Shown here: positions 1 to 62,985 of the stretch, one piece after another
Layout: each line of letters starts with the position of its first letter
Numbering within the stretch: position 1 is the stretch's first letter
NCBI RefSeq assembly: GCF_040938485.1
Contig: NW_027271668.1
Coordinates: 62,001 to 126,000 of the forward strand
Source of the DNA: Diadema antillarum
Taxonomy: Eukaryota
Direction of reading: 5' to 3'
DNA: 64,000 nucleotides
The notes under the pieces: generated by a model
Told to the model about the DNA's origin: nothing
Databases searched by the model: none
Seen by the model: only the letters and a program-made list of their open reading frames with translations
Position numbers and translations under genes: made by a program

Positions 1-3000
1 GTTCCTGGCAATGAGACATGTACGAGAATGCGCAGCGGAAGATGACGCCACTGGTGAAGTGTGCCACTGTTTTAGAGAGTTGAACGGATTCCCCCGAATC
101 AGCAGCTTTCGACAGCTTATTCACTAGGACATCGGCAGTCTGCAAGAACAGAATCGTATGTATATGCCTTATATCTCTGCCTTTCGCCCGTAAAATATAA
201 AGTGCAATCTTAATTGCAATATTTGACATAGGCCCTCGACATAGTAAAACTGTCAATGTTTAGGTTAATTTCATTTAGTCTGAAAACACGTCATACTATC
301 TGCAACGTTATGTTCTCTGAAAATACTTTTTCATTGACGTGTACTCTGATTGTAAGGCTGTTGAAGATACGCCACACTTTCACTGTATATCATAATGAAA
401 GGTATTTAGATGTACTCTGTTAAAGATTGCTATCTGTGTTCGTATATACATAGGCCTATGTGTGTTTGTGTGTGTGTGTGGGTGGGACTGTGTCGATAGG
501 TGTTAAAGCATGTATGAACGACTCATGAACTCTGAGAAGACAAACCTCATTCATGGTGGAAACGTATCGTTTCAGCATTTGAAAGTAAAACGATGGCGTC
601 AGAAGGCGACGGTGCCTCTTCCAAGCAGCGCCATCTAAGATGCCAAGTCCCTCGGTCCACTCCGTAAATGTCTTGTATTCGTCACCCTCGTTAGGGAAAC
701 AAATATTGATTTAGGTTACATATTGTTTCAAAAAAGCTCAAAAGTAAAGAAATGCATTCTAATAGTAACCAGACCATCCTTTATGACTATCATTAATACT
801 TCTCCTGTCATTTTAATCGACATAACCATTTGTAGATGAAACAAATACCCAGCTTTACTGCTTCAAAATAGTTCTTAAAATTGAGTTACGGATAGAAGCA
901 ACCAGTGTAAACATGTTAATAAGTATGATAATCAATGTTAAGTATTGTTGAATATACCAAATGTGGACAATACCTATAATGAAATTCATATACAATATTT
1001 TGTCAACTTGGTGATAACACCAATCCTGTAAAGTTTTAAATATTGAGAATATAGGCATGCAATTTGAATACGATGAAAATGTGAAAATAAAGCCCTCTCG
1101 GTCTCCCAGACGTATAATGTAATTACGTCACAGATGTATGTGCAATTAAAACTTGTTAAAATTGTAGAAACTAGCTATTATTAGTAGTATAATACTTGTG
1201 TATATCATGTTTGATTATATAGCTAAAAATAATAGATGTTATACAGAGAATAGATCAAATCAAATCAAATCAAATCAATCAAAACCTTCCTATGTGTCAT
1301 GCATACACTTGAAACAGCAGCAACCAATCTACTTACTCGCAGCTTTAACTTAGCTTATCATTTTAGGTTTGAGTGTATTATGTAAAGACCCCCACAGGGC
1401 TTTGTCTCCCCTATCCACCCCCACCCCCCTTGACCCTGGGTGCCCCAATCATAATAGAAAACGGTTTCCATTTTGAAGAAAATTTGAGCATGCATTTTCA
1501 ACAAGAAGATGAAAATGTTGAATTTGAGCCAGACAACAGATGGACCCACTCTAAGGGCCCAAGGTGCAATACCAGGTCCGCCATGAACAACCTTGAAACT
1601 ACAGTTATCTATGCACTTAGTCATAGCATCACGTTAATAGCTCTAAATGCCTACTTCTGATTCTAGAGAAGAAGATTTTTAAACATTCCTTTAATGGTGG
1701 GGGGGGGGGGGGAGGGGAGGGGGACAAGGAGATGGGAGTTGTGCGCATTTGAACATTTGAATTCAGGTTCTGATTCCATAGGGATGCTACCTGCCAAGTT
1801 TAGCGAAAATCTGTCTTTGGGTTTACAAGAAGATGATGAAAATGCAAAAGGTCGAAGCACGACGGACGACGCACAGCATACGGCCACTGCCAGACGATGA
1901 ATGATCGCAATAGCTCACTCGAGTCTTTGGCTCAGGTGAGCTAAAAACCTGTTGCGGCTTCGAGAATAAGACTAATCAATCGTGAGGTACCTGGATCTAG
2001 TCCCCTGGCTCCCCTGGTTTGTGCCTCTCCACGAAGCACTTTAACCTCATTGCCCAGTCTTTTCGATGAAAGTCAAAGTCAATGGTTCCATGTTTGTTTA
2101 TCTATTAGCCCTTGTAACCCACAAGAAGTCATAATTCCATTCAATTCGATGCTTTACGGTACTGAGTGGAGAATATCATTGCTTGACTGGGATATTGGCC
2201 TTTGTCTGATATTGATTATCTTGTAATTCTTTCTAATTTTTAACAGAAGGAACAAAAAGACACAAATACAGATGGATAATAAGAATCTCAAGTAGGCCTA
2301 CTTTCAATAAATATCATATAACTGAGGAGGACAACATAATCAAGGTAATGTAACAAGAACATTTTTTTCCCTGTTTTACTGATCCGAACCTAAGATTTAG
2401 TGGTCCGAAAAATAAAGAAGACCATTAAATAGAATTGTGAGCTTTCTTTTTTTTGGTAGAATGAGCGCTTTATAAGAGTCTCTCTATTATCATTATTATT
2501 ATTATTATTATTGTTGTTGTTATTACTACTATTACTATTATTATCATTATCATTATTATATTTCGATACCTTTTTTCTTCCTAACTGTTAATCTCCCCCG
2601 CAAAACGCACACACGCGCACATTACTAATAAATATACCCACATTCGCGAACATAAACAGTCGCAGCACACACAAACATAATCATGGTACATACAAGGACA
2701 AAGATGTAAAACACTTCAAGATACACATACAACAGCAGCAATTTTAGTCAACACACAAAGAGACCCGTTTTTTGTTTTTGTTTGAGGAATTTGATCGTCT
2801 TATAATTTTGCTTCTTAATTCATACATCACTTGTTGAACACATTTCATCGATTATACAATGCTGTATTGTTTGAGGTGGGCATCTTATACGACTTTCCCC
2901 GACCTGGGAATTGGTTCGGGAAAATAATGTTCAGAGACTCACCAGTGCTCCGATGGTTGTACTACTCAAGAGTTCCTTGATGCTGTCGGGGTGGTTCAGC

Positions 3001-3263
3001 ATAAATATAGGCTTCCATCCAATCCACACCACCAGCAGTCTAGTGTACTTCTTCACGATTTCTTGCTCCCATACATAGCCCGGCTTGTGAAATCCCGGGT
3101 CGCGGATGTTTCCATAGAACCAGTGTGGCTTGGGCCCGGGAAGATGGCGTCGGATGTACGCTAGACGGCGAAGAGTAGCGACCAGTGACAAGAGAAACTG
3201 GACAATCCTGAAACCAAAGATGGATAAAGCAACAGTTCCCAAAATGGTCGTAACAAGCAACAT
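1..3263 (-). CDS. Cytochrome P450, CYP4 clan, copy A (partial: exons 1-3; remainder lies left of the window)
   Basis: Exon 1 3263-2943 (ATG; MLLVTTILG...PGPKPHW...NHPDSIKELLSSTTIGAL; donor CTG|GTGAGT, phase 0). Exon 2 686-546 (GDEYKTFTEWTEGLGILDGAAWKRHRRLLTPSFYFQMLKRYVSTMNE; 141 nt as in the paralogs). Exon 3 from 139 to the window edge (TADVLVNKLSKAADSGES...VIFRCAFSYMSHCQE). No stops in the visible exons. Confidence 0.88.
1360..1947 (-). mobile_element. Non-autonomous Helentron-associated (HINE/DINE-like) element in intron 1 of copy A
   Basis: The minus strand begins TTTTTAGCTCACCTGAGCC...GAGTGAGCTA (terminal inverted stem), followed by a short CGTC/GTCC-type microsatellite and internally repeated blocks (catttttcatcttctt). 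The family call comes from recall of this architecture; the left boundary is approximate. Confidence 0.55.
1975..2080 (+). mobile_element. Degenerate tRNA-derived SINE-like fragment
   Basis: A decayed B-box-like segment (ggatctagtccc) is followed by gtgcctctccacgaagcactttaacctcattgc, resembling deuterostome SINE cores. Weak call. Confidence 0.3.
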
Positions 3264-4400: not shown

Positions 4401-4415
4401 AGGTCACACAGTTCA
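4401..4415 (+). promoter_or_regulatory. Nuclear-receptor direct repeat DR3 upstream of copy A
   Basis: AGGTCA-cac-AGTTCA about 1.14 kb upstream of the ATG, inside a block homologous to the DR1-bearing blocks of C and D. Confidence 0.55.
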
Positions 4416-5196: not shown

Positions 5197-5231
<35 letters not shown>

Positions 5232-7677: not shown

Positions 7678-10600
7678 TTAACGGTGACTAAACTTGAGAA
7701 GGATTTCGTTGTCTGGCTTGGTTACAATTTGGAAGACTGGTCGGGCTCCCTTCACTAGGCTGACACTGAACCTGCGAAAGACTCGTGCTGCCGCGCTCCT
7801 TAGTTCGTCCATGGCGAATTGCTGCCCGATGCAGTTCCGAGATCCGGCCGAGAAGGGGACGAAAGCGAAGGGGTCTCGCTTCTCGACGTTGGCCCTCTCA
7901 AATCGTTCAGGTCTGAAGTCCATGTGGTCGTCTCCCCACACATCCGGGTTGTGGTGGGCCTGGTAGATGTTCACCACCACGCTGGTTCCCGCGGGAATAG
8001 TGCATCCATCCACCTTCAGCGGTTCCCTCAGCACGCGAGATGGCGGGATGTTCATGTACATGCGCAGCGATTCCCTGAGACACTGCGTTGTGTAAGTTAG
8101 TTTTTTGAGATCTTCGCTAGAAACGGAAAGAGAGAGAGAGAGAAAAAAAACCAACGGGATTCCCATCAATGACAGTATCTTACCAATTATCTCATTGACT
8201 CTCTCATACTAAGTCGTGCTGATATGTAAAGATCGTTCATATATATGACTTAAATTCAGAATGCGTCTTTCTTTGCTATTATTGTATTTTGAGAAATATT
8301 CAAGTGCTATACTCCTCTCCTCACAGTATCCTTTTAGTTTTATCTAATAACACACACCAAGTCAAGTACACGCCAATTTCAATTCGTTCATTTAATCACT
8401 GATTTTAGGAATACATTATTCCACAAACATACATACATTACACACACACATACATAGGCCTATATTATTATGTAATTCACGTAAACTTGGAAAAAGTGCA
8501 GTTTGTCATTGTTGTCTTTAAAGATCATGTGCTCAGTCATGCATGACATTTGTCAAAATAAGAAAGTATCAATGGAAAGAAGAAGTCTTCTTCCATAGCT
8601 CACAATCATGAAATAGTAGCATTCCAACGTTTGATTACCTTTTTTCTTTTTTTTCCTTTTTTTGGGGGGGGGGGGGGGTATACGCACAGTATGTGTGTCT
8701 GTGTGTGTGTGTGTGTGAGTGTGTGCGTGTGTAAATATGTGTGTTTATTCACATCTTTTTTGTTGGTAATTCTGCTGTACTAAGGCACATCGATTCATAT
8801 CATTGAATTTTGTTTAGAATGAAAAATGACGTGTGTGTGTCAGTTATTGCCTTGTTTTCTTTTACTTCCTAGTGCAGAAATGGTATACAGTATACTGAAG
8901 GGACTGTCCTTGTCACGATTTACAGTATCAACAAACTAAAGGGACGTCTTTTATTGAATGAAAGTGAATGAATAGTATTGGAAAAATCTTTAGGAACGTC
9001 TTTGTTGCTAACTCAGTCACAATCACGCAACACAATCTCTATATGAACCGGTCGAACATGGTTTTACTATCGAACGGTGTCGTCATCTCGTCCTGCGAAC
9101 AATGTGTCCATCTCCTCTTGAACTCGGGCCTGTTCCTCGGTATGTTGGGCCATGGTGTACAGAAACCACGTGAGGGCACTTCCGGTGGTGTCCGTGCCGC
9201 CAAAAATGAACGTGCTTACCTGTAATGTAGAGAAGACAATTTCTATGAAATCATAAATGACGAATCTTGTACAATGTTGTCAATGTACATTGTAAAATAA
9301 GGAACTAACGCAGAATCGCGATTAACACCTATCATTAAGATTCATAGCGCAGCTGGAATGGTATCTATCATAAAGGATCATATCATTCAGATTCATGAAA
9401 TTCTTCCGTCGAGATGTTTTCATTGCAACTGATTGACAAATTGCACTACATCGACGTAAATAAGCACTGAATTGATCAGTGTTTTAGTAGTAGCCAAGAC
9501 AAAAATCATGGGCGTGCATACTCGAGCAGGATTCGAACCTACGACAACCGAGTTTCCGCCCGACAGCAAGTGTTGGTTCTGATCCTTATAGCATGCAGCG
9601 GGTACTGCGTAATTATTCAAATTCATGGAATTCTTCCGTCGAGATGTTTTCAATTCATTTTATGAATCATATTTCATATCATATTTCTTCATCTATATCA
9701 TGAAATAAACATTACCGAGAATATCTTTACAAAATAGCATTTCTAATATTTCTAAGAAAAACTGATCTGTCACCAGAGCCTGATTTAGGCTCAATGGGTT
9801 TGAAAGTTTGTACTTGAACATCTTTGAATACAGGTTTAATCTGAATATCGGGTAATTTGAAAAGCTATTGAAAAACAAAGAACACAACTAACTTAGCTGG
9901 AAAGTACCTCATCACGTATTTCCTTCTCACTCAGTCCGTTGCCATTCGAATCTTTTGCTAGCAGCAATGTATCCAGAAAATCCATCGCTCTCTTCTCCGG
10001 CTTCATAAAAAGAGAACAAAAATGAATACAATGGAAAATACTAACTTTTATGGCCAACACTTTATTTGCTTGTAGCTAGATACGGCAAACTGAAATGGAA
10101 CACTGTAAACATTCAAGGAGAGTAATCATAAATATGCGGAGGGGGGGGGGGGGATATTCTGTTACAATTGATGGGATCAGCACCGCTGTGTGCTTGTAAG
10201 GTGTCTGTAAACCGTTTATGCATTTCTCGTAAAACTCGTCTTTATTCACTGTGTTATTGTTCCCGTGTTTGTCAATCCAATGTGGACTCAGATTGAACTT
10301 TGAGCAAATATATAAAATACACAAATTGAAGGGGCCGCAAACGGTGGTGGGGGACAGCCCATAATGCCCCCTCCCTCTCGACCACGCACCCCCCCCCCCC
10401 ACACACACACATTTTGCAATTGGAACAAAGTTGAAATAAGAAAAAAAATCATAAGAAATCCTATGAACTCTCAAGGGATATTTCCAGAGCCTCTTTCAGT
10501 CGAGGCGGGGGGGTCATCCCATGAGCTCGATACCCACGAGTCATACAGTCAAAAGGGGGGAGGGGGCAGCCCACGAGCTCCATACACTAAGCAAAAATGA

Positions 10601-26412: not shown

Positions 26413-26455
<43 letters not shown>

Positions 26456-35300: not shown

Positions 35301-35339
35301 TTAAAAGGGGTCTTTTGAGGGTGATTTAAATGTAATATA

Positions 35340-40913: not shown

Positions 40914-43900
40914 CTAGCGGTGACTAAACTTGAGAAGGATTTCGTTGTCTGGCTTGGTTACAATCTGAAAGACGGGGCGGGCTCCCTTCACTACGCTGAC
41001 GCTAAACCTGCGAAAAATCCGTGCCGCCGCGCTCCGCATTTCGTCCATGGCGAATTGCTGCCCGATGCAGTTGCGAGCTCCGGCCGAGAAGGGGAGGAAG
41101 GCGAAAGGGTCTCGCTTGTCGACGTTTGCCCTCTCGAAGCGTTCAGGTTTGAAATCCCTGTGGTCGTCCCCCCAGACATCCGGGTTGTGATGGAGCTGGT
41201 AGTTGTTCACCTGCACGTCGGTTCCCGCGGGAATAGTGAGTCCATTTATTTTTAGCGGTTCCTTCAGCACACGACCTGGTGGGACGTTTAAGAATAGGCG
41301 CATCGATTCCCTGAGACATTGCGTGGTGTAGGTCAGTTTTTTTAGATCTTCGCTGAAAATAAAAACAAAACACGATCCCCATCAATGACGGTATCTTACC
41401 AGTTATCTAATCATATTTATACAATGTCATGGCGATCTGCAAAGATCATTCATAATTATTACTTGAATTCCGAAAGCGTCAATTCATTGCTATTATTGTA
41501 TTTTGGGGAGCAGTTGGCCAGGTCGTGTGGGACAAAACCCCGTCCGTTTCACGTATAACATTATTTCATAATTAATCATGTATGTGTTGATGATATGGAA
41601 TCTTTGTGATGATGAACCTCATCATTATGTTTAATAGCATCTACATGCAATTTCAGTTCAAATTTACTCACTGATATCAACATGTATACATTATCATGCG
41701 CATACACATGCACACACACACACACACACACATTACAATTATATACATGTGTGTGTGCCTATGTGTGTGTGTGTGTGTGAGAGAGAGAGAGTATGCGTGC
41801 TTATTCACATTTTTATAGTTGGTAATTCTGCTGTACTATTTTTATTTCATTGAATTTTGTTTAAAATGAAATTCGTGTCAGCTATTGCCATGTTATAATC
41901 CTTTATTTTCAAGTGTGGAAATGCTATATACTAAAGGGACTATCTTTGTCACAATGTACAGCAATACCAAACTAAAGTGTTGTTTTTTATTGATTTGTTG
42001 TGGTTTTTTTTTCAACAAATCTTGATGGACGGGTTTTTTGCCAACTCTGTCACAATCGCGCAACACAATCTGTATGTGAATCCGTCGAACTTACTATCGA
42101 ACGCTGTCGTCATCTCGTCCTGCGAACAGTGTGTCGACCTCCTCCTGAACTCGGGCCTGTTCTTCGGAATGCTGGGCCATGATGTACAGAAACCACGTGA
42201 GGGAGCTTCCAGTGGTGTCCGTGCCGGCGAAAATGAACGTATTTACCTGTAATGTCATCAAAACGAAAGGCAAACCCATGGCTACTTATTTCAAGACGAA
42301 CCTTTTTCAATATTTTAGAATATAGGCCCTACATTGTATAATCAAGAACCAACTCATAATCGTGATTAATATCTATCGTCTATCATCATTATTCCCGACT
42401 TTCCCAGTTTCCCACACTCTTTGTAGTTGTAAGCTTTCACCCCCTCCCCCCTTATTTTCCCCCTTTCTCTCAGAGGTATTATACAAGCATAGTCTTTTGA
42501 GTGGGTACCTCCACTGTTTTTCGCAGAGAGTAAAAAATATAGAGTGTATGTTCTTTTTTTTTAATGTACTGATCATGTAGACATGAACATGTTGTTATCC
42601 CTGTCTGACTATGTATATTCTAAACGACTCGCATGTCAAATCTATCATATTGTTTCTTGTACATTCTGTTGAAAAAAAAGTGAAAAATAAAATAAAGTTT
42701 GAATTTGGATTGATTCGTAGCGCTGGAATGGTAACTAGTATAAAGAATCATATTTCTTCATCTGTATATTATTGCCGTAAATATTTTCCACCAAAAAAGC
42801 ATTTATCCTATTCCTAAGAAAAACTGATCCGATATCAGACCCTCCTTCAGGCTTTTTGGGTTTGCAAGCTTGACTTTCACCTTTGAATAAAGATTTAATC
42901 TAAACATCTGGTGATTTGAAGCCAACGAAGAAACAAATAACATAAAAAGGAGCTGAAAAGTACCTCATCACGTATTTCCTTCTCACTCAGTCCATTGCCA
43001 TTCGAATCTCTTGCTAGCAGCAATGTATCCAGAAAATCCATCGCTCTCTTCTCAGGCTTCAGAAAAAGACAGAAATAAAAAAAAACAATGTAATAACTAA
43101 CTTGTATGGCTAACATTGTATTCGCTTCTACGGCAAACTGAAATGGTTATACATTTTATACATTCAAGAAGAGAAGCCATCGGTAGAGCCTATGCGTTTT
43201 TATGTTTGGATCCATGGGATCAGCACCAAACGCGCCAAAGTGCGCCTGTAAGACGACTGTAAGGATTTTCTTCTATGTATTTTTGGTAAAATTCTTAAAA
43301 TTATAAAAAAGAAAGGTTCATGACTTATACAGCCCACATATCCTAAAGCTCACGAGCTCCACGCTTACGGCAACAACAACAACAACCACAACAACAACAT
43401 CATCAACAACAACATCGTCATTAAAATGACCCACGAACTCGTCAATTATAGGCAAAGAAGCACGAGCTCGAGACTTGGCAAGAAAAGCCCACGACACCGA
43501 CACTGCGTATATTAAGATCTATTTATATACCTCATATAGATTCCTCTCATCAGATTGGTTAAAAGTGGAGTCATGAAAATAGCTGTGCCCCATTCTTGAT
43601 CAAAAACGTCATGACGTCAGATGCATGGCGCGTGTTTATGGGAAAAACGTTGGGTTAGGGTTTTTGGTTATGGTTAGGGTTAGGGTTAGGGTTAGGGTGG
43701 CCGCGCCCGGGGCATTGAATCAACTGTGCCCTGTAAATAGGTTTGGAGACACATAGATCGCTCATTCATTATGTACGCACCAATGATACGACCGCCGCGC
43801 CGCGCTGTCGATCAGCGTTGATTACGAGTGCTGCTTTTAGTCATTGTTTAATTCAGGTAACCTTTTAACCAATCAGATAAGAAGAATCTATATTTTCGTT

Positions 43901-46900
43901 ATATAAAACAAATAATGACAGCTTGATATTCGGGGCACAGTTAAAATTATGTAGGCCCTCGGTGATGTGAAAACCATAACTATGCCCTCAGCTTCGCTTC
44001 GGGCATAGTTATGGTTTTGACATCACCTTGGGCCCATAATTTTAACTGTGCCCCTCATAGTAGTCATTATTTGTATAATAATGTCCGTCTTGCGGGCATT
44101 TTTCGCCTAGTGTCGTGCTCGTGGGTCTGCCTGTACTAGTGTCGAGCTGGGCCTGATTTGCGTAGAGTCTAGCTCGTGGCCCTGTAAAGCTCGTGGGCCT
44201 ATTTCATTCGATGTCAAGCTTACTGGCGTCGTTCACTTTAGTTCTAGGACTGTATGATGTGTGGCCTGTATGACTCATAGGCGGTTTAACTCGTGGGATA
44301 TGCGCCCGAGGAGGGAGGGGCGGGTGTTAATATTGACCCTGATATAGTCCCCCACCTGCATTGGCTGTGCAAAAGTTTACCAACAAGACTAGTGATGAGT
44401 GGCATTGATCGAATTAATACATCATAATCTCTCAGGTTACCTCTTTCTCCAAGGCATATCTTTGTCGCCGCTCTGCGACAATCTTATCGTGTATGCCATG
44501 CATGTAAGAACAACCCTCTTTCCACTCTCTGTTCTTGGAGGACAGCCAGAAGAAAAAGCCGTAGAACATCAAAGGATGGTACACTCTGCGAGAAAACATT
44601 TTTATGGTGATGATATATAGGAAAAATGGGGGAATCCTGAGCATTAATTGCACGATTGATCCTTTTTTTTTTTGGTCTTTTTTAAAGTGAAGTTTCCTTG
44701 CATCTCTCCGCGGATTACTGGGCTATCATGATAATTATGATCTACAGCTTGTGGCAGTAGGAGAAGCAATGTAGGCCTACACGAGTCCATCGCATCGGTA
44801 CGGTTCGGTTGATCTGCATTACTAGTAGCATGAGTAATACAAAAATGTTTTTATGTTTATGTAACTTTAAAAATCAAGGTGGCTTGACATACGACTACAA
44901 AAATGTCAGAAATGTTATGTTATTAGCAGAAATAGATATCACTGATGTGCGCCATATTTTGCAGTTTGTAGGAAGTACTAACTTAAAGCATATGCGTGCT
45001 TTCGTTCAGTATGTCCAGAGGACAAGAAGATTCACTCTAACACAAAATTTTGTTAGATATTAAGTACTAGTATATGTTTGATTTAATCATTCTGCACATT
45101 GCACACAACCCAGATGTTTGCTTTATATCTTAGCGTTGTTTTGTTTTTTGATTAATGTAAATTTGTGATAGAATTCGAGTTGAATACTCCCGACTAGGAA
45201 TAATCACGAGCATCGGTCGAGCCCCTCTCGTGTATTGGAGTGGCCTAGGCAGGCGGACAGCCAATCACGGCCCCTCCTTGCTGAGAAGTCTGCTCAAGGT
45301 ACCGAGCCGGGCTGGCCAGAAAATACGATCGTCGATTGGGCAGCTCGAACCGAGGCCAGTGAGGGAGATTTCATTTTGATACAACGTATTATCTTGAATT
45401 ATTTATCAATAAAATGAAAATAATATAGGGTAAAATTTGAAAAATTTAAAGTGATTTTATGAATATTGATTTGGTGTAAATATTCCTTGAGGAATGATAA
45501 ACGCCAAATAAATTCAAATAACAACAACAACAACATGCCCTTGTGAACGTCTTAACATGAATTTTCCAAGATTCCGATATCAATTTGACAGAAAATAAAT
45601 GATTACTGCTTGGAGCAGGAGAACATTTATGTAAGGAGCAATTCGTCCGGATGTATTCATGCTTTGTGCAATATTGAAAGGAAGTCATACTGTAAAACTT
45701 GAACACAGTCTACAAAAGAATCTTCAGCGAATGAAGGACCCAGACTTCATCAGAAGAAAAAGGGGTAGTAGTAGTAGTAGTAGTACAGGTGGTGGTGATG
45801 GTAGTAGTTGGTAGAAGTGCAGAAGAAGAAGAAAAAGAGGAATAAGAAGAAAGAAAAATCACCTGTAGGCGCAGATATTCGTCAGCTTCTCCAAGACCTC
45901 CACTTCACGTGACTCCTTTTCCTGGCAATTTGATTGGTGGGAAAATGCGCAGCGGAGTATGACGTCAAGTGAAAGTAGTGACATGGTTTCATGTGTTTTG
46001 ACCGGTTCCCCTCGGTCAGCAGCAACGTGAAGCTTGTCAATCAGGACATCCAAAGCCTCAATTAAAGAAACAATTCAGGCAAAGATAGTTGTGAACGAGG
46101 ACCCTCTTAGATTTTCTTTAAGAAATTGACAAACAAAAAAATAACTTACAAAAATGCGTAAAGACAAACAAGTAAACCAATAAAAAAAAATACCAGAGAG
46201 ATACATTGTCAGAATTCTAAGGAGCATGCTAACGTAAAAGTGTGTTAATTCTAAAGTGTTTGAAAGAATGAAAAAGGTAAAGTTCCACAGAGGAACCAGA
46301 TGTAGAGCAATTTGCTTAGTCTTACTGGTATACACCTCACAAGGGGTTGATGAATGCTTGTTTCTGATGGTTTAAAGATAATAAAAAGTTTTGGTACCTC
46401 AAAAGTTCCCCTGAATTTCCGTGTTTCATGTTAAAGTACCTCTCATATTATAACTAACACTGTGAGACTTACTCGCCCCAAAGTGCTCTTATTTCTTAGT
46501 AATCATGCAACTAACTGCGACCAGCAGCCCCATACGCATAGCGTAATGGGGCTTCACATTGTAGCATTCAGGATTATGACAGATTTAGTATGGCGGGTAA
46601 ATATCAACTTAAAATCCTAAAAATTCTTCAATTTGAAGACTTACCAATTAAGTTGAAATATTGAAAACAGGCTTCGGGCAACGTTTGGTTCTGCCAATAG
46701 TCCCTTTCTGTTCGAATTGATGACTGAATGTGACTCGGTCGAGAGGACCTTGGGAGAGCTACATACACTGATTACTACGGCCAGCGCATGCGCACACATC
46801 ACATGCGAACAAATTTCAAATCCATGAACGAATAAGATATTTGTGTGCGCATGCCCTGGCCGTCAATTTAGTGTAGCTCTCCCAAGGTCCTCTCGATCGA

Positions 46901-49900
46901 GTCACATTCAGTCATCAATTCGAACAGAAAGGGACTAGCGACTATTGGCAAAACCAAACGTTGCCCAAAGCCTGTTATCAATACTTCAACTTAACTGGTA
47001 AGTCTTCAAATTGAAGAAATTTTTGGATTTTAAGTTGATATTTACCCGCAATACTAAATCTGTCATGATTCTAAATGCTACAATGCGAAGCCCCATTTAG
47101 CTATGCGTATAGGGCTGCTGGTGTTAGCTATGCGTATGGGGCCGCTGCACGCTGCTGGTCGCAGTTATCATGCAATAATGGTTTCGTACAATACGTGTAC
47201 TACCTCGCTGCCGTACGGCGGCGGCTCTGGTACGAAACCATTATTGCATGATTACTAAGACATGAGAGCACTTTGGGGCGAGTAAGTCCCACAGTGTTAG
47301 TTATATGAAAGGTACTTTAACCTGAAACACAAACTAAGACAAGGAAATTCAGGGAAACTTTTGAGGTACCAAAACTTTGTATTATCTTTAAGTTGCCGGC
47401 CTAAATTTAACAATGGGGAGTTTTCGCTACAACACGGGAAGACCGAGAATACGCGGAAGCAATCACCTGTGACAGTCCCCGCACTATAAAGGACTCCAGT
47501 CCCCATATCTAAGCAGTTTCACTTTCCTGTGAGGACGGAGCTGTGGGGACAAGAATCTGATCACTGATTGGCTGACTGGCTGGCTGGCTCACTCCAGCCC
47601 AGCATCGGGACCGAACACTATATTTTCGAATACCGTACTCGTTTTCCACGGGACGGGGCGTTTCTCGGATTTGATCATGCGCAGAGGCAAATTCTGCACA
47701 CGGCACTCTCAAATACCGGCTAGGTCGTGCTTGCAAAAACTCCCTATATTGGCCCCCGCGCGCGCAGCACAGCTTCATAACATGCAAGCATCCAAGCGGT
47801 CCGCTTCATAGCATCCTAAAGTACCCGGATGCGGACCCGGACGTAACACTTGTGTACTCTTAACGCGCTGCGCTTGGCCGTATCTAGCGCGCGCGTCCAC
47901 CTAATCAGCGCAGCGGAAGGTACGTGCACAATCGCTGTACCCTACCCTACTAGGTGTCAGTACTAGCACATAATTAAGATCGTCGCCGTAACAACGCTTA
48001 TAGCGTGCACATGTGTGATATCATGGAATCTATAGTGGCAATGCAAACGAAAAAAACAAACAAACATAGGCGTACGTGACCTTTTAAAAATATAACTTCG
48101 GTGAATCTAATCTGCAAACGTCAGTACATGTACTGTGGAAGGGGGCGGGTGCACAGAGATGTTGAACTTAACAACTCAATATTTTCTTGGCTCAAAGTCA
48201 CATAATATATGTTCGCCATTCCATGTTTACGGAAGAGGAAATTTGATTTTGAACTTAGAACATTATGCAACTCCTACGCATGTATGTTTTCACGTAAAAT
48301 AAGGAATAACTAACAACTGTAACAAGATAACTTTCAAGTCATTATTCAATTCAATTCAATTCAATTCAATCATCATCTTCAATGAAGCATTTGGAACAGA
48401 GTATATCTATGCTCTGGAATATTACCTAGAGCCTCTAGAATTTCAAGAGAAGAAATGGCAGTCTTTACAATGCTAAGTATTTTTTTTTTTGCGAATTGTA
48501 CTTCAATTAATAGTCTTTTTCGGCATGAAGTGACATGTTAATTATGGCAATAATAAGAAAAATTGTTGAGCAAACTGCTGAAAGGACAAGTTCACCTTCA
48601 TAGACATGTGGATTGAGTGAATGCGGCATTAGTAGAACACATCAGCGAAGGCTGGGGGCGAATCGGAAAATCCCTTCACTTACGAATTTTTGAAGTGTCT
48701 GCGCAGTCACTGCTGGGTGAAAAGACTACTACAGCTTGTGATGTCACATGATATATACAAAGATATAACGACAGTAAAAAGAAAATTTCACATGTTTTCA
48801 CTTTTCTCGCATAATAATAGAGCACTTGACTTGCCTATTTTAGAAGGCAGGGGGGAATTATACTCCCCTAATTGTATCGTTAGAGAGTCGAGGGAATGTG
48901 TACTTTTTACCGAAAATTAAATTCTCTAAATATTTTTCTCTTGACGTTGTACACAATGACATCATAAACTGTAGTAGTCTTCTCATCGAGCAGTGATTGT
49001 GCAGAAGTTTCAAAAAATCATAACTTTTGACAGGATTGTCTGATTTCATTTTCTAAAACTTTCACTGATATGTTCTACTGATACTGCTGCATTCTCTCAA
49101 TCCTTATGTGTATGAAGGTGCACAGTTCCTTTAAATACCCACCTCATTCATAACCACCAGGTATTGTTTCAAGACCTGAAAGTGAAATGATGGCGTGATG
49201 AGCGTCCGATGACGCTTCCAAATAGCGCCCTCTATTATAGCCAGTCCCTCGGTCCAGTCCTTGAAAACCTGATATAATTGAGACTAATTCAGAGAAAGAA
49301 AAAAAAAACAAAGAGAGAAATATCAATGAAAGTATAATACTATAAACATTATAACAAAAACAACGGTGTTAATGAAAAAAATTATCACAGTAACGATAAA
49401 AACTCTACTAGTATCTGTTAGAATCATTCACATAACGGCTTCCTTATTAGAGCCTGTAAATCTCAAGAATAAGTTGATGAACTATGAAACGTAGAAAAAC
49501 GACTAAAAAATGCAAACAGGGGTTTGTCAGAATAAATTCATAGTCTGGTCTAGTACGTGTGTGTGTGTGCATATACATATAAACAGGGAGAGAAGAGAGG
49601 GTGTGTGTTCGGGGGACTTACCAAAATCTTGTGATGGCATCATATCAAATCGTTTAGCATACCAACCGACTGTTACAATTTCGGTTGTCATTTAAAAAAA
49701 AAAAAAAAAAAAAAACCCTCACAACGTGCAGAAAAGTTAAAAAGCCCCTATACGTCTCCTTGGGAGCACAATGTAATGGGATTCTGTTACGTTAACGTTA
49801 TGGAGTCCATGAAAGCTAATCTGTAGTAATTGGGGCTTCAAACGAAGTTGTGAGATCAACTAAAAGATAAATTGTAACTACATTCACTTCATCATTCGTT

Positions 49901-50019
49901 AAAGTTAATGACCTAATTGCCTCAAACAGACAAAAAAAAACAACTTACATTTTCTTAAGCGTAAGTTTGAAGACATGACGGTAAAGTCAACATCTAATGA
50001 ATTGTTATACATTTGATTC

Positions 50020-50055
<36 letters not shown>

Positions 50056-50734
50056 TGAACACTGTTGAATACTGTAATTACTATATTTTTTCACGCTTAA
50101 ACCTGACATTAAGATGTCACAACACAAACAAATCGACGCAAACGCACACGCATACACACACACACACATCCAAACCTCTACTTTAATGACTTACCCTCCC
50201 CTTCCCGCACATGCCAAACTCTTTTTGTTTTAAGTAATTAAAGATCCCATATTTCTTCCAGAGTGGTAAAGTTTTCTAGCTCTGACTATTGTAAAAACCC
50301 CATGCAAACCCATACGACATAACAAAAACATCAGAAAAAATCTATACCACTCATTGATTTTGATAAGTTTGTTTTATGCAGAGTCACGATGTTAAAACCT
50401 ACTTTGTTATTTTCTCAATATGTATATTCTTTGTTGGAATTACCTCATGAGGACAAGAGGGATGGTTGAGCATTACTAGCGGTTTCCATCCCATCCAGAA
50501 CACCAGAAGTCTCCGGTACTTGGTCACTGCTTCTTGCTCCCACTTAAAACCCGGCTCCATAAACCCTGGATCGAAGATGTTGCCATAGAGCCAGTGAGGC
50601 TTGGGCCCGGGAAGATGTCGTCGGATATACACTAGACGACGAAAAGTAGCGACCAGTGACAAGAGAAACTGGACAATCTTGAAACCAAAGAAGGATAAAA
50701 CAACAGTTCCCAAAATGGTTGTAGTGAGCGACAT
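40914..50734 (-). CDS. Cytochrome P450, CYP4 clan, copy D (7 exons; exon 1 shortened; predicted 484 aa)
   Basis: Exons 50734-50444 (predicted new donor GAG|GTAATT, phase 0), 49283-49143, 46056-45863, 44585-44441, 43056-42964, 42246-42095, 41352-40914. Exons 2-7 are intact (VNTFIFAGTDTT, ESMR, PERF, PFSAGARNCIG). An extra in-frame ATG lies 11 codons upstream (50767). Functional status is uncertain because helix B is missing. Confidence 0.8.
43320..44310. mobile_element. Foldback element of intron 4 (copy D ortholog of 10515-10960), split by an insertion
   Basis: Left arm about 43320-43505 (cccacgaactcg / cacgagctcgagacttggcaa) and right arm about 44080-44310 (cctagtgtcgtgctcgtggg). Confidence 0.6.
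43508..44079. mobile_element. Crypton-like non-autonomous element with a long terminal hairpin and (TTAGGG)4
   Basis: Inverted pair atatagattc.tct.atc.gattggttaaaa, a hairpin with arms of about 55 bp centred on cagcttcgcttcgg (about 43990), and four perfect TTAGGG at 43674-43697. Sits in the foldback spacer that is short in B. Confidence 0.55.
46376..47387. mobile_element. 1-kb near-perfect palindromic Kolobok-like element (intron 2 of D)
   Basis: TTAA|AGATAATAAAAAGTTTTGGTACCTC ... GAGGTACCAAAACTTTGTATTATCT|TTAA. Arms mirror for more than 400 bp around a loop of about 45 nt near 46800-46840. Confidence 0.85.
47169..47250. mobile_element. 82-bp mini-MITE inserted in one arm of the palindrome
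   Basis: catgcaataatggtttcgtac...gtacgaaaccattattgcatg, absent from the mirror arm. Confidence 0.7.
47415..47745. mobile_element. MITE with GGGAGTTTT(C/T)GC termini (Harbinger-like)
   Basis: gggagttttcgc / gcaaaaactccc ends with a GC-rich interior. Confidence 0.5.
48583..49130. mobile_element. Kolobok-like MITE inserted 12 nt into intron 2 of copy D
   Basis: Imperfect TIRs of about 70 bp, aggacaagttcaccttcatagacatgtggattgagtgaatgc / aggaactgtgcaccttcatacacataaggattgagagaatgc. Flanks TGAA / TTAA; the site is empty in B, C and E. Confidence 0.8.
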
Positions 50735-52284: not shown

Positions 52285-52297
52285 AGGTCAAAGTTCA
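52285..52297 (+). promoter_or_regulatory. Distal DR1 upstream of copy D
   Basis: AGGTCA-a-AGTTCA in a context identical to C (gcgaggtcaaagttcaggttgagggttcaac). Confidence 0.6.
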
Positions 52298-55159: not shown

Positions 55160-58100
55160 CTAACGGTGACTAAACTTGAGAAGGATTTCGTTCTCTGGCT
55201 TGGTTACAGCCTGAAAGACGGGGCGGGCTCCTTTCACTAGGCTGACGCTGAACCTGCGGAAGATTCGTGCCGCAGCGCTCCGCAATTCGTCCATGGCGAA
55301 TTGCTGCCCGATGCAGTTGCGAGCTCCGGCCGAGAAGGGGACAAAAGCGAAGGGGTCTCTCTTCTCGACGTTGGCCCTCTCAAATCGTTCAGGTTTGAAG
55401 TCCATGTGGTCGTCTCCCCACACGTCCGGGTTGTGGTGGACCTGGTAGAGGTTCACCATCACGTTGGTTCCCGCGGGAATGGTGAATCCGTTCACCTTCA
55501 GCGGTTCCCTCAGCACGCGAGATGGCGGGATGTTTAGGTACAAGCGCACCGATTCCCTGAGACACTGCGTGGTGTAAGTTAGTTTTTTTAGATCTTCGCT
55601 GGGAACGAAAACAAAACATGATTCCCATAAATGACGGTATATGATTATCTCATTCACTCTAGTACAAAGTAATACCGATCTGTAATGATAATTCATATCA
55701 CTGGAATTCCGGATGGGTCTTCCTTTCCTACTATTGCATTTCGGGAAGCAGTAGGCCAGCACGACTGGTATAAAATCCGGACCGTTTTACGTATAACATC
55801 TATACCATGCATTGCCATGTATACGTTGATAAGTGTACTGCCAAGAACTGTATAGAGTCTTTGTGATAATGACCCTCATCATAATGTGTTTGGGTAGCAT
55901 CCATTGTTTGCCATTGAGAAGACTGGATGTAGATAGAGCTAGAGAGGATCAGCCAAGATAAGCTATTCATAAAGAACTCACAGTATCCTCTTTGTTCATC
56001 AAAATAGTATGACGATGGACTAGTCGAACATAATCTTACTATCGAACACTGTCGTCATCTCGTCCTGCGAACAGTGTGTCCACCTCATCTTGAACTCGAG
56101 CCTGTTCCTCGGGATGCTGGGCTATGATGTACAGAAACCAAGTGAGGGCACTTCCGGTGGTGTCCGTGCCGGCGAAAATGAACGTGTTTACCTGTCATGA
56201 TATCAGAACGGAAAGCAGACCATGGCTAATAAATGATAAATCTATCACTTGTATGCTTATCAATCGTGTCAATATACACTGTAAAATCTGCAACTGTATA
56301 ACGCAGAATCACGATTAGCACCTAAGACTCATAGCGCAGGCATAGTAACTGTGAAGGCACATATTTTTCATCTCTATCACGAACTATATTACCGAGCTAT
56401 CTTTTACAAATTAGCATGTCTGCTATTCCTAAGAGTAATGCTCTGTTACCGAAGTCTTAATTAGGTGTTGGGTTTGCAAGCTTGAATTTTCAGGTGATTT
56501 TCTTTGTTCCGAAAGTTACGTTTATTCCGAAGGTTCGGTATTCCGAAACACACAAATTCCATGTACATACATGTTGTAGATGCTCGTTATTCAAAGAAAA
56601 AAGAAATGAAATGGGGATCATTAATCCACACATTAGTGGCGTTGTTCCGGAGGTTACAATCTGTTATTTCGAAAATACGTTAATCAAAAAATTAAATCAG
56701 GTCCGTTATTCCGAAGGTTTATTAATCTGAAAATGGAAAAAAAAAAGGTTCGTACAAGAATCTTTGCTATTACAAACTTTATTTCGAGTTTGGATCAACA
56801 AACTTTCGGAATAACATACCTTCCGAATAACAAAGTGTAACCCTATTTTTATCATCAAATACGAATTCAATTTGAATATCTAGTGAATTAAAAGCCAACA
56901 AAGAAACAAATAGCACAACAAAAGTGCTAGAAAGTACCTCATCACGTATTTCCTTCTCACTTAGTCCGTTGCCATCCGAATCTTTTGCTAGCAGCAATGT
57001 GTCCAGAAAATCCATCGCTTTCTTCTCCGGCTTCATAAACAGAGATAAACGATAAACATCATACAATGGACAATATTTGTGGCTATCATTTTATCAGCTT
57101 ACAACTAGAAACGGCAAACTTAAATGGTGCATTGTATACATTCAATGAAAGTGGCCATCAGTATGCGTTTGTATTTTCTGTTTGGATTCCTAGGATCAGC
57201 GTAAAACTCGTAAAACTCGTCTCTGTTGATCGGTTCTTTTCCCTAGGTCGTCAATCTAACGTGGGCCTTTGATAAGACCTTGAGCAAAATGTAAGATTAT
57301 GAAATAAGGGAGCGCAAAACGGGGTGAACAGCCCCAAGGACCTCCCCCCCCCCCCCCCACACACACACAGACACATTTGGCATTTAGAAAAAAAAAAGTC
57401 AAAATAATACCAAAAATCACAATAAAACCAGTGACTTCCCGAGGGTTCTGTCTGGGGGCCCCTATTCGTTAAGGGGGGGGGGGAGAGGGGGTGTCACCCC
57501 ACGATCTCTACACCCACGAGTCGTACAGTCCACGAGCTTGACATTGCAAAAAGGGTGTCGCATACACCCTGTAAATCATATAGCCTACAACCTCGACACT
57601 CTTCAAAAAGAAAAAAAAAGGGCCACAATCTCGACACTTTATAGGCAAATAAGCCCTCGAACATGACAGTATAAGGAAAATAATACATTCATGATCCCTC
57701 AGGTTACCTCTTTTTCGGTGGCGTATCTACGTCGGCGCCCAGCGACGATCTTATCATGTATGCCATGCATGTAAGAACAACTTTCTTCCCATTCTCTGTA
57801 TTTGGAGGACAGCCGGAAGATAAAGTCGTAGACCATCAAAGGATGGAGCATTCTGTTGAGGAAAATTTCAGGTGATTAAAAAAAAAAAGAGTGGGCGTAA
57901 TCGTTCCTGAAATTTTTTTACTTTAGATACTGTATTGATTTTTCTTTTTTTCTCTCTCTTTTTTTACGGAAGTTTCCTTCACATCCTTGTGGATTATTGA
58001 GCTGGTGTGATAATTGGGATCGACAGCCTGTGAGATTGGGAGAAACAATGTAAAATTACGAGTCCAGTGTTGCTATGTAACTCGGTTAATTTCTTCACTT

Positions 58101-60437
58101 CCGCCCCCAAGGCTTACTTCGTTCCATCTGACGACCGCGTTCGGTGCGGTTGGTCGCGTTACACAACCTTTCGTAGATTATATTTGCCCTAATATTCGAA
58201 CATTAAGTTGTGATCAATAACAATCCCGGTTTTTTTTTTCTTCCTCAGCACAACATCATTCCATAATATAGCAAATGCCGAGACTATGCGGGTTTTAGAA
58301 TAATGTCGAATCACCTGTATGTGCATATATTCGTTAGTTTCTCCAAGACCTCTACTTCACGTGCCTCCGTTTCCTGGCAATTTGATTGGTGGGAGAATGC
58401 GCAGCGGAGTATGACGTCAAGTGAAAGTAGTGACATGGTTTCATGTGTTTTGACCGATTCCCCTTCGTCTGCAGCGACGTGAAGTTTGTCAATCAGGACA
58501 TCCAATGCCTAGATTAAAGGTTTAATTCAGACAGAGACAGTTGTGAACAAGGAACACAAATTTTCTTTATTTGTAGTAGGGAATGGGGTTAAAAAATGAA
58601 TAAACAAAAACTTAGTCACCGAAAAACCATAAACACAAACAAGCAAGCCAATCAATGAACCGAATATTATAACAAGAGATACCAATTAGTCACAGAGGCA
58701 CATTGTCAGAATTCTAAAAAGGATTCAAAGGATGAAATGAATAAGTTCCAGAGAAACCGCATGCAGGGAAATTTAGTCTTATGCTATCGGCAGCTTTGTT
58801 TTGATTATTCAAGAATAGCAAATGAAAACAAAAAACAACAACACACCACATACATTCGGCAATATGTGCAATAATAAGTAGACCTAAGTCAAATTAGGCT
58901 CATCTAATGACAAAACATGTCCATGTATGTACACTGAATTTTCTGCATTCATAAAGTAGAAGTCTTAAATGATATTTCTTTTAAAGTGTGCTAAACTATA
59001 AGTTTCATCACTAATCCAGTCATATTTAAGTAGGAATTATCATTTTAAGAAAGGATTTTGAAGTTAAATGAAACTGCGTTAACACTCGGCAACTTTTTTG
59101 ACATCAGCATTTGCGATGATCATAATTGTGTTTCATTGATTTATCGAAAGAAGTTCATGTAATAGAGCTTTGAATTCTTCAGAAATACTCAGTGGGTGAA
59201 TTCCATTTTTCTTGGCCAATAGATTTCTTTAATGTATTTAAGTATACAGATGTCCTTTCTGAATGTGAGAATCTTTATGATCTAAATCACAATCCAAATC
59301 TGTAGAATTAAAGAAAATTCATACATAAAAGGCATGGAATTGAAGATCTTTCAACACTTTATGGTAATATTGTCTTCTTCTTATTATTATTATTATTATT
59401 ATTATAATTATTATCATTATTATTATTATCATTATCACTATCATTACATGTAGTTCTTCGAGAATGAAATAGAAGCAAACACGCACAAAAAAAAAACACA
59501 TCAGTGGTATGAATATCATATGAACACAGAATCCATGAGATATCAGGCTTATAAAATGTATTCTTCAAATCAGATAAAGTTTCAAAACTTAGTTACTCAT
59601 ACTATGTAAACAGCCATAAAACAATAGTTGCAGTAACCAGGTCATCAAATAAACTACGAAACTAACTTATCATTGAGTCTTTCGTTTTCCTTTGAATCAC
59701 AGAAGGCCGATTGAAAATAGAATTCGTAGTTTTCAATTTAAGTTCTTTCACTCACACACACACACACACACACACAAAATCGCCGCCATGACTTATCTTT
59801 GTAAAATTGCAATAACTTCAGTGAATCGTATCGGCAAAAGTTTTTTTTTTTTTCTTGGGGGGGGGGGGGAGGGGGAATCTCGACAGGAACTCAATATTTC
59901 TGTGCTCAAAGACAAGATATTCACGGTTCTAAATAATTGTTTTAGATGAGGAAGTAATCATACTTTGGAACTTACATTTCATAACTACATACATTATTTT
60001 TTCATTTCATATTTTCACGTAATGTCAAGGATATCATGCGTACTTTAAAGTCATTCTTTTTCGACGAAGCATGTGGAACAAAGAAAACATGTCACAGCTT
60101 TGAAAATAATGAAGCGCCTGTAGAATTTCACGAGAACAAATGACAATCTCTGCAATTCTATGCTTAATGCTAAATCAAGTTTTTACATGTTGTACTTCAA
60201 CTGGGGGATGACGCATGCAACGTGTTTATTGTGGAAATAAACTTTGAATGAAAAATAAATGGTTGAGCAGCTTGCTGGAGTCCACTCACCTCGTTCATGA
60301 CCACCAGGTATTGTTTCAAGACCTGAAAGTGAAATGATGGCGTAATAAGAGAGCGATGGCGCTTCCAAATATCGCCATCTATTATAGCCAGTCCCTCGGT
60401 CCAATCCTTGAAAACCTGATATCCGTCAGTCTGATGC

Positions 60438-60470
<33 letters not shown>

Positions 60471-62985
60471 AGTATTAGATTAATATTGATACATGAGTAC
60501 AATGATACAAATTTAGATATTCCAACAACAACGGCCCTCTAGTATGGCCAGTCCCTCGAGCTAATCCTTGAAAACCCGATCTATATAGAGTAATATCGAT
60601 AAGTAAAGTACATGTGAAATTGAGTAACAAATGAAAAAGACACATAATTGTATTAAAGTATATACATAGTATTATGCATAAAGTACAATTAACGATGGGA
60701 TTTCAAATGGAGGTCCCACTAAAAAGCAAAGCTTGTACGATAAGGGACCCTCAGATAATACATAAGACAGCGAATAATGAATTAACGAAGCTACAAACGG
60801 ATATGTAACAAAATCAAACGAACCGATGTTAACTGACATGAAATCAAATTGGGAAGGTAAAAAAGAAAAAAGAAAGAAAAAGAAACTACAGCATGTGCCA
60901 TCATGGACACAAGCAAACAGAATTTAATGATATAAGAGTAATGATAAAAACAACAACCTGGATTGAGTATATTGCAAAGAATTTTGTACATAATTATACG
61001 GGTAAGAATCAATGCAGAAGAACGGACATAGAAGAAGGAGAGAATAGACATAATGGTATATACGGTACAATAATACACTGTAAAAACATCGGTGTTAGAT
61101 TTAACACCACGGGTGTTAAATTTAACACCGGTCAAACTTCAATAAAGGACCACACCCACGGGTGTTGAAAATGCACTGTGATGGTGTTGAAAAGTGTTCA
61201 CCTGACACTTCGTGGTGTTAATTTGACACTGTACCTGGTGTTATTTTGACACCGTACTGGTGTTAATTAAAATATGACACCACATGGTGTTGATTTGATA
61301 TTTGTTGGAGTTAATATCAATAGTTTAACACCCGTCCAGCTTCAATAAGAGACCACACCAGCTGGTGTTACTGTGGTGTAAATTTATTTTCATATTTTTT
61401 CAAAAATCTAGTATTTTAATGTAAAATTCTTGATCGTCTTGTTTAAATTAAAAATCAACAAGAAGTGCAGTTACTAAGAAACTCTTCAAAAACAGTTTAA
61501 AATTTGGAAATGACACCAGGAGGTGTTGATTTAACACCATAAATGAGCACCGAAAATTTAACACCAGCTCGGTGTTCACTATTTAACACCGCGGGACTTT
61601 TTGCAGTGTAGGAATATTATCTGACAAGGACTTGTGTTTAACAGATTATTTTCTCTAATAGAAAAATGATTTATACATAACTGTTTGATGCTTTAATGAT
61701 GACTTGACTGAGATGACGAAACGAAACTAATTCGGTTGTATGTTGTAAGATCTCAATACAAACACTTTTTTAATTTGTTCTTAAAAGAGTTCAAAGTTTG
61801 AGCTCTTGTTATATTGTTGTGAGCTAAGTTCCAATACTACGGCCCATCGTAGATGAATGTGTTCTGAGCCAGCATTGCTCTAAAAAAAGGTAAATAGAAA
61901 TTATTCTATGTCCTTGTTCGATAATTGTGAATGGATTGATTTCTTCGAAACATTGTTTCAAATACATTTGGAAGATTATAATCATACATATTGTCCTAGA
62001 TTAAACAAATACAAATCTTTAATTGTCAATATTTTGTGTTAAAAAATAACGGGTCAGTATGAGGCAAAAATGCAGTATGGCATATGATACGGAGTGATTT
62101 CTTTTGTATTAGAAGTAATTTATCTAAGAGTGTTTGATGTATATTTCCCCCACTCGAGAATACCATAATTTAAATATGGCAATATTAGGGATGAATATAA
62201 TGTAAGCAGGGACGATAAAGGAAAAGAAAATTTAAGCTTATCAATTATATCAATGTTTCGTGAAATAATTTTGCATAATCGTAAATTATCAATATGACAT
62301 TTGGATATAGAAACAAATAAATGAATGAAAATGACATAAAAAGGCCCACACCTCCAGAAGCTTTTCTTCTACACGGACCGTTTTTCCAATAACACAATGA
62401 TTTTGTTCAAACAGCTTGACAAAGGTTATTAACTCTCTTGTTTTCTTTTTCAATTGCAAACATGAAAATCTCTAATATGGATTTGAAATTACCAATTTGA
62501 TGGAACTTATATGATAGTGGAAATACAGTTGAATTCAATTGAATTCAATATGGAGTAAACCTCGACAAGTTTACAGGTATATTGTAATCTTTGCGAAATC
62601 TAAGTCGAATGTTATCAAATAACTATCTTGTTCTTTTGGTTCAGTTATGAGTATCATTTGGACATACCTTTCTTCCGATGTTTGTAGCCAGTATAGGTTT
62701 AATGCTATCAGGGTGGTTGAGCATCACAATCGGTTTCCATCCCATCCAGAACACCAGAAGTCTCCGGTACTTGGTCACTGCTTCTTGCTCCCACTTAAAA
62801 CCTGGCTCCATAAACCCCGGGTCGCGGAAGTTGCCATAGAGCCAGTGTGGCTTGGGCCCGGGAAGATGTCGTCTGATGTACGCTAGACGGTGAAGAGTAG
62901 CGACCAGTGACAAGAGAAACTGGACAATCTTGAAACCAAAGATGGATAAAGCAACAGTCCCAAAAATGCTTGTAATAAGCGACAT
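55160..62985 (-). CDS. Cytochrome P450, CYP4 clan, copy E (7 exons, 493 aa)
   Basis: Exons 62985-62668, 60430-60290, 58508-58315, 57852-57708, 57030-56938, 56191-56040, 55598-55160; GT-AG, open frame. Motifs VNTFIFAGTDTT, ESVR, PERF, PFSAGARNCIG. Confidence 0.95.
56491..56850. mobile_element. MITE with ttattccgaagg subrepeats (intron 5 of E)
   Basis: Imperfect TIRs ggtgattttctttgttccgaaag / ctttcggaataacataccttccgaataacaaagtgtaacc. The site is empty in B and D. Confidence 0.6.
57490..57665. mobile_element. Left arm only of the intron-4 foldback element (copy E)
   Basis: acccacgagtcgtacagtccacgagcttgacattgcaa...ctcgacactttataggcaaa. The right arm is deleted. Confidence 0.55.
60532..60581 (-). 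pseudogene. Decayed partial duplicate of P450 exon 2 in intron 1 of copy E
   Basis: The minus strand reads R-V-F-K-D-stop-L-E-G-L-A-I-L-E-G versus QVFKDWTEGLAIIDG in the real exon 100 nt downstream (TGG changed to TAG). Confidence 0.75.
61076..61608. mobile_element. Non-autonomous EnSpm/CACTA element (intron 1 of E)
   Basis: TA|CACTGTAAAAA ... TTTTTGCAGTG|TA with many ggtgttaaatttaacacc subterminal repeats. Confidence 0.8.
61750..62315 (-). mobile_element. LINE (CR1/L2 group) ORF2 3' fragment (intron 1 of E)
   Basis: CKIISRNIDIIDKLK, LYSSLILPYLNYGILEWG, LLLIQKKSLRII, HTDPLF, SIHNYRTR, NTFIYDGP and SFKNKLKK across frames. Same type as 20226-21135. Confidence 0.85.

Follow-up and report, generated by a model that had tools for sequence, protein, structure and literature searches.

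The window analysed here is a 64,000-nucleotide stretch of the sea urchin Diadema antillarum genome (RefSeq assembly GCF_040938485.1, contig NW_027271668.1, positions 62,001 to 126,000), and it encodes part of a tandem array of cytochrome P450 genes of the CYP4 clan. A motif scan together with a self-comparison of the sequence revealed four exons encoding the heme loop and five first exons, all of them belonging to genes on the minus strand and not on the plus strand. Exon ends were set by coordinates taken from alignments of the copies to each other, which yielded four complete genes of seven exons each (B, C, D, and E), plus a fifth (A) that enters the window with its first three exons. Gene B (7678..15817) holds exons at 15817-15500, 13625-13485, 12540-12347, 11262-11118, 10000-9908, 9219-9068, and 8116-7678; gene C (22490..31497) at 31497-31180, 30266-30126, 28026-27833, 26806-26662, 24254-24162, 23789-23638, and 22928-22490; and gene E (55160..62985) at 62985-62668, 60430-60290, 58508-58315, 57852-57708, 57030-56938, 56191-56040, and 55598-55160. 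These three genes share exon sizes of 318, 141, 194, 145, 93, 152, and 439 nt, and each encodes a product of 493 amino acids. Gene D (40914..50734; exons 50734-50444, 49283-49143, 46056-45863, 44585-44441, 43056-42964, 42246-42095, and 41352-40914) encodes 484 amino acids as modelled, while the 5' part of gene A (1..3263) consists of exons at 3263-2943, 686-546, and 139-1, the third one being truncated at the edge of the window. Every intron in the window follows the GT-AG rule, and no exon inside it contains a stop codon or a frameshift.

A preliminary description of this DNA had reported at least five head-to-tail open copies. Five are indeed present in the window with open exons there, but the array itself has eight members. 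In an analysis that included 100 kb of flanking sequence, it spans 106 kb of the contig (hereafter C780; 34117-140452), in the head-to-tail order Z, Y, A, B, C, D, E, F, with the remainder of gene A located outside the window at C780 61946-57791. The seven-exon GT-AG structure is common to all eight genes, of which six retain a fully intact frame on this haplotype. The array consists of two physically contiguous subgroups, Z-Y-A and B-C-D-E-F, whose proteins are 83-93% and 84-88% identical within each subgroup, respectively, and 64-71% identical between them. Gene A belongs to the divergent A/Y/Z subgroup, and its product is about 64-68% identical to those of B to F.

These genes are already present in RefSeq, under names borrowed from CYP4F22. 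The models obtained here for C and D are identical to XP_071505748 and XP_071505749, and the one for B only differs from XP_071505747 in that exon 2 is skipped in the latter. In the RefSeq model for E, exons 3 and 4 are swapped for a short alternative, and in that for A 10 amino acids have been trimmed, which avoids a stop codon. The RefSeq model for Z begins with exons 1 and 2 of Y, leaving Y as a 213-amino-acid fragment (C780 34117-54899).

The D. antillarum assembly, generated with hifiasm, measures 1.75 Gb against a haploid size of 0.7-0.9 Gb, keeps both haplotypes, and shows 84.4% of BUSCO genes as duplicated (PMC13511894). A genome search with exon 7 retrieved eight copies on C780, eight more on a second contig (C1203) in mirrored order, and one distant paralog pair. 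The comparison with C1203 was carried out with short loci and RefSeq proteins. The C1203 loci align to their C780 partners over 2.4-3.4 kb, including introns, with 86-98% nucleotide identity, while their alignment to the other copies extends over the exon only, with 77-89% identity. At the protein level, the alleles on C780 and C1203 are 97.2-98.8% identical, and neighbours within a contig differ by 12-36%. Because C1203 partners align through introns and paralogs only over exons, the copies in the window are true paralogs. The preliminary description had named misassembled haplotypes as a finding that would undo its reading; instead, all eight copies appear on a separate contig with their order kept.

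An assembly gap (23368..23517) falls within intron 6 of C, which separates exon 6 (ending at 23638) from exon 7 (starting at 22928). The sequences on either side of the gap align colinearly with the other haplotype as far as the gap edges, and the alignment coordinates leave about 136 nt between them there. The phase-2 junction of this intron across the gap matches that of all other copies, the spliced model of C corresponds to XP_071505748, and both the C allele and the ortholog from Diadema setosum are colinear with it at full length. Gene spacing also differs between the two haplotypes, with discrepancies of as much as 9 kb in an interval, and they are 86-87% identical at the A locus, compared to 95-98% at most other loci. 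Structural heterozygosity at the array is thus large.

Exons 6 and 7 alone match the P450 family PF00067 of Pfam with 49.6 and 141.6 bits (cut-off 22.8), placing the genes in the P450 superfamily, and the RefSeq proteins of the locus carry this domain. The heme Cys loop (F-x-x-G-x-R-x-C-x-G), the ExxR motif of helix K, the PERF motif of the meander, and the acid-alcohol pair of the I helix are intact in all eight copies, and these catalytic motifs are invariant columns in a 52-sequence alignment. Among solved structures, CYP4B1 is the best match to exon 7 of E. The RefSeq model for A matches CYP4B1 with 257 bits (E = 3e-75), CYP3A7 with 176 bits, and CYP46A1 with 129 bits. The AlphaFold2 (AF2) model of C, with a predicted local distance difference test score of 91.5, finds CYP4B1 as its best Foldseek hit (template modelling scores of 0.88/0.92; 0.80 for CYP3A4). 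The best 120 named relatives are all of the CYP4 type. Membership of the CYP4 clan is therefore indicated by the nearest sequences, by the fold, and by the grouping with named CYP4 proteins in the tree. Identity to the vertebrate CYP4A/B/F/T and mollusc CYP4 proteins is 32-38%, below the 40% that strict assignment to the CYP4 family demands; by this rule, which considers sequence identity, the array is a separate family within the CYP4 clan, whose formal name is a matter for the nomenclature committee.

Sea-star proteins (39-43% identical) and those of other urchins (41-48%) are closer. In the tree, an echinoderm-only clade divides into sea stars and urchins, and the Diadema array forms one clade; the echinoderm, echinoid, and Diadema clades each received a Shimodaira-Hasegawa-like approximate likelihood ratio test (SH-aLRT) value of 100. 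The expansions in Lytechinus and in the sea stars took place separately. In D. setosum, the genes Z, Y, F, and C have orthologs with 93-97% identity (93% for C), so the duplications of the array predate the split between D. antillarum and D. setosum. An exhaustive protein search for close relatives, on which the claim of lineage restriction is based, retrieved no one-to-one ortholog outside the genus Diadema among the data searched, where nothing outside the genus is more than 48% identical. The lineage-specific tandem expansion within the CYP4 clan that the preliminary description had proposed is thus borne out by a Diadema-only clade (SH-aLRT 100) in which all motifs are intact.

The closest characterized relatives in sequence and fold are the vertebrate CYP4B1 and CYP4F, ω-hydroxylases of fatty acids, alkanes, and eicosanoids (PDB 5T6Q and 6C93). 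They share with the array a microsomal layout, with an N-terminal anchor and a proline hinge, together with the I-helix acid-alcohol pair, ExxR, PERF, and the Cys loop. Apart from the low identity (32-38%), they differ from it in the I-helix Glu that forms a covalent ester with the heme 5-methyl, which is replaced in all eight copies by Ala (Gly in B), and in the next residue, a His replaced by Thr, Ala, or Ser. The array thus falls outside the covalent-heme type of CYP4A/4B/4F. Most other CYP4 relatives (71 of the 113 whose I-helix motif could be located) keep Glu, while it is missing from all members of the echinoderm clade examined and from some other CYP4 proteins. As a consequence, the term "atypical" previously applied to these P450s holds for the absence of the heme-linking Glu, but this feature characterizes the entire echinoderm clade and not the array; judged from the sequences compared, the loss is old, clade-wide, and not special to Diadema. 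In CYP4B1, replacement of this Glu by Ala keeps turnover but lowers ω-selectivity, shifting oxidation from the ω to the ω-1 position (PMC9916508). Since this residue is missing, strict ω-hydroxylation by the enzymes of the array is unlikely.

A second system similar to the array is the set of proteins named CYP4F6-like or LTB4 ω-hydroxylase 3-like in Lytechinus variegatus and L. pictus (XP_041461261-64, -281, and -282), which belongs to the same echinoid branch of the CYP4 clan. This set also lacks the heme-linking Glu and is multi-copy on a single chromosome-scale record. In contrast to the 493-494 amino acids of the array proteins, its members measure 505-511 amino acids; they are 45-48% identical to them and form their own clade, according to which the Lytechinus and Diadema expansions are independent.

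The ratio of nonsynonymous to synonymous substitution rates (dN/dS) ranges from 0.13 to 0.30 in all 28 gene pairs, including those with A and D; dS lies at 0.22-0.35 for pairs from one subgroup and at about 1 for pairs from different subgroups. This reveals purifying selection overall, and not the values near 1 throughout that would have spoken against functional retention in the terms of the preliminary description. Among B to F, 142 of the 493 amino-acid positions vary, and, as had been noticed before, they are clustered (permutation p ≤ 0.0002), while the synonymous changes are distributed nearly evenly. The variable patches comprise residues 102-127, 216-262, and 365-401, which in the structural model correspond to the end of helix B up to the B'-C loop (substrate-recognition site 1, SRS1), the F-G region, and the end of helix K with sheets 1 and 2 (SRS5), respectively. 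In SRS1, dN/dS reaches 1.4 (without D); the SRS5 patch has a value of 0.7, and the positions that belong to no patch give 0.17. When six SRS windows were set beforehand from the predicted structure, only SRS1 was enriched, with 18 replacement and 3 silent changes against 124 and 138 outside the six windows (Fisher p = 0.001).

The SRS1 patch of C is encoded on the minus strand at 30213..31197, with codons 101-106 at 31197-31180 and codons 107-124 at 30266-30213, separated by intron 1, and these same codons also make up the patch that varies in B, D, E, and F. Paralogs differ at 33% of the SRS1 positions, whereas both D. antillarum/D. setosum orthologs and alleles differ at only 3 of 96, so each copy conserves its own version of SRS1. 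Relaxed constraint was considered as a source of the SRS1 signal and judged unlikely, because orthologs and alleles rarely differ in this region; past diversification followed by constraint fits these sequence comparisons better. The "diversifying" copies of the preliminary description can thus be narrowed down to a divergence centred on a single substrate-recognition region.

According to these data, the window very probably represents one of the two haplotypes of a head-to-tail array of eight genes for microsomal P450s of the CYP4 clan, duplicated before the split from D. setosum and kept by selection. Repeated tandem duplication before that split built the array, and selection maintains the copies as working genes, with divergence after duplication mainly in the B'-helix patch of SRS1. 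Each enzyme is predicted to be held in the membrane of the endoplasmic reticulum by its N-terminal anchor, to receive electrons from NADPH-P450 reductase, and to hydroxylate or epoxidise lipophilic substrates, and the copies together would probably cover related substrates, either dietary or from lipid metabolism. The family turns over by birth and death, represented on this haplotype by an A allele with a nonsense codon and a D allele that is likely crippled. Xenobiotic P450 blooms are exemplified by the vertebrate CYP2/CYP3 and the insect CYP6/CYP9 clusters. These blooms resemble the array in their head-to-tail tandem duplication, in a birth-and-death process with segregating null alleles, and in a fold under purifying selection with change focused on substrate-recognition sites. 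However, they belong to different clans, and in the array significant diversification is found in SRS1 only.

Several points weigh against this reading. The tree was built without an outgroup from outside CYP4, so that the placement in the clan depends on the rankings of PDB sequences and folds. Taken together, the six SRS windows defined from the structure show no enrichment for replacements (p = 0.21), and the SRS1 test is based on five paralogs and parsimony counts. Moreover, the deviations of the RefSeq models for B, E, A, and Z/Y may be either mis-predictions or real alternative or chimeric transcripts.

The alternative that survives best, although it is considered unlikely, is that the array makes or degrades endogenous lipids, such as fatty acids, eicosanoid-like signals, or very-long-chain lipids, instead of providing chemical defence against dietary or environmental compounds. 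As a rule, P450s that serve core endogenous functions occur as single copies and are conserved from phylum to phylum, a pattern opposite to that of a family with nothing outside Diadema more than 48% identical and with independent expansions in Lytechinus and the sea stars. The closest characterized relatives, CYP4B1 and CYP4F, are nevertheless fatty-acid and alkane hydroxylases, and the RefSeq names derive from CYP4F22. Strong purifying selection, and the maintenance of the copies as D. setosum orthologs, each with a conserved SRS1, would also be expected of an endogenous function. On the other hand, two of the eight genes hold probable loss-of-function alleles in a single individual, which suggests dispensability, and the Glu that favours ω-hydroxylation is absent (PMC9916508).

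These two alleles are also the starting point of a second alternative. Exon 1 of D is 27 nt short owing to a 164-bp deletion, which took away the final 43 nt of the exon together with its donor site and the beginning of the intron that follows. The deletion junction (approximately 50459) and a candidate substitute in-frame donor (50444) delimit the segment 50444..50459 on the minus strand, in which former intron sequence encodes five residues. This in-frame GT keeps D open, with a predicted product of 484 amino acids identical to XP_071505749, while the D allele on C1203 (XP_071476286) encodes 493 amino acids with a normal end of exon 1. The AF2 model of C assigns the lost residues, 93-101, to helix B, and the D allele of this haplotype is therefore likely crippled, as far as that model indicates. 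In gene A, codon 226 is TAG on this haplotype and TTG on the other; it belongs to exon 4 and is located 719 bp before the first position of the window. Consequently, the statement that all copies are retained open is valid for the exons in the window, but on this haplotype D lacks helix B and A has a premature stop, the alleles of both being intact at these sites.

From such defects it could be argued that much of the array is decaying, with several copies unexpressed or non-functional and open frames that only reflect a recent origin. RefSeq holds no canonical models for B, E, A, and Y, and no transcript-derived Diadema proteins of this family appeared among the matches of the protein search, both of which agree with decay. 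However, dS values of 0.22-0.35 within and about 1 between subgroups have accumulated and yet dN/dS stays at 0.13-0.30, with six of eight frames intact; on the other haplotype, A and D are undamaged at the positions where the alleles of this one are defective, and the D. setosum orthologs have been kept at 93-97% identity. General decay is therefore regarded as improbable. Finally, an explanation of the repeated copies as an artefact, in which haplotypes or collapsed repeats were put side by side during assembly, appeals to the uncollapsed diploid assembly (84% of BUSCO genes duplicated) and to the gap inside C, but it already fails, almost certainly, on the separate contig C1203, which carries all eight copies in order with partners 97-99% identical when contig neighbours differ by 12-36%, and on the intronic position of the gap, whose flanks are colinear on the other haplotype.

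Overall, the array is a real, well-preserved, genus-restricted tandem P450 expansion, ordinary in kind. For P450 biology, it represents one more fairly clean case of duplication and divergence, with a heme-linking Glu lost across the echinoderm clade. The present analysis provides corrected seven-exon models for eight genes, evidence for an age of the array greater than that of the split from D. setosum, an indication that functional differences between the copies probably reside in the short region SRS1, and two candidate loss-of-function alleles, in A and D, which could be genotyped in populations. D. antillarum is a keystone reef grazer, and its ability to oxidise lipid signals or the defence compounds of algae may influence the breadth of its diet and its health. 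A broader and doubtful scenario can be postulated, in which a separate echinoderm family of the CYP4 clan lost covalent heme attachment early and then radiated independently in each lineage of urchins and sea stars as a diet-linked oxidation battery, with copy-specific gates and segregating null alleles in Diadema. If this were true, each of the eight Diadema members would possess a fixed B'-helix substrate gate, and individuals would differ in the algal or lipid compounds that they can oxidise.

Regarding regulation, a DR1-type direct repeat of nuclear-receptor half-sites is located at 32770..32782 (plus strand), 1273 bp upstream of the ATG of C, and an identical one at 52285..52297 (plus strand), 1551 bp upstream of the ATG of D. 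A DR3-type version with matching half-sites is found at 4401..4415 (plus strand), 1138 bp upstream of the ATG of A. The repeats of C and D are contained in homologous 156-bp blocks, 83% identical, because of which they count as one inherited element; the two strict DR1 matches in the window, versus 0.14 expected, correspond to this single element. No DR1 or DR3 repeat was found within 3 kb upstream of B, E, F, Y, and Z. The shared nuclear-receptor-type promoter sites described previously are thus present in A, C, and D, at 1.1 to 1.6 kb from the ATG, but absent from B and E. Most copies are homologous to each other upstream of the ATG over no more than 20 to 280 nt. With repeats in front of only three of the eight genes, those of C and D being one element, and such a short upstream homology, these sequences do not support the proposal of a coordinately inducible battery.

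The first 50 codons, encoding the anchor and the proline hinge (minus strand; 62985-62836 in E, 50734-50585 in D, 31497-31348 in C, 15817-15668 in B, and 3263-3114 in A), show a different pattern from the rest of the genes. In approximately this region, third-position differences between subgroups are 0.14-0.18, the same as within them, while they rise to 0.40-0.55 between subgroups in the rest of exon 1 and exons 2-6. These sequence differences suggest gene conversion or constraint at the nucleotide level at the coding 5' end.

The distant paralog detected in the exon 7 search is a single gene present as an allelic pair (C72:4068071-4068502 and C746:446398-446829), with an exon 7 that is 58-59% identical to that of the array. 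In the tree, the CYP4F6-like gene of Strongylocentrotus purpuratus and the D. setosum protein P0199 constitute a separate echinoid clade next to that of the array, and this paralog is probably their D. antillarum counterpart.

The remodelling of introns by transposons noted in the preliminary description is evident, as intron lengths differ up to three-fold between copies and intron 2 of D contains a 1-kb non-autonomous element (46372..47391) with terminal inverted repeats of approximately 150 bp. At least 40 scored copies of this element, with 86-95% identity, are distributed over many contigs. The spacer between C and B holds a reverse-transcriptase fragment (20745..21200, minus strand; Pfam RVT_1, E = 7.7e-12), and the 9.4-kb spacer between D and C contains tandem repeats that resemble satellite DNA (35339-38080 and 39308-39562), their units measuring 253-256 bp and 138 bp. 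The array is flanked by unrelated open reading frames, one below Z with a weak match to rhodopsin-type G protein-coupled receptors (C780 26594-27487) and, on the other flank, one above F with a RING-variant domain (C780 144912-145619).

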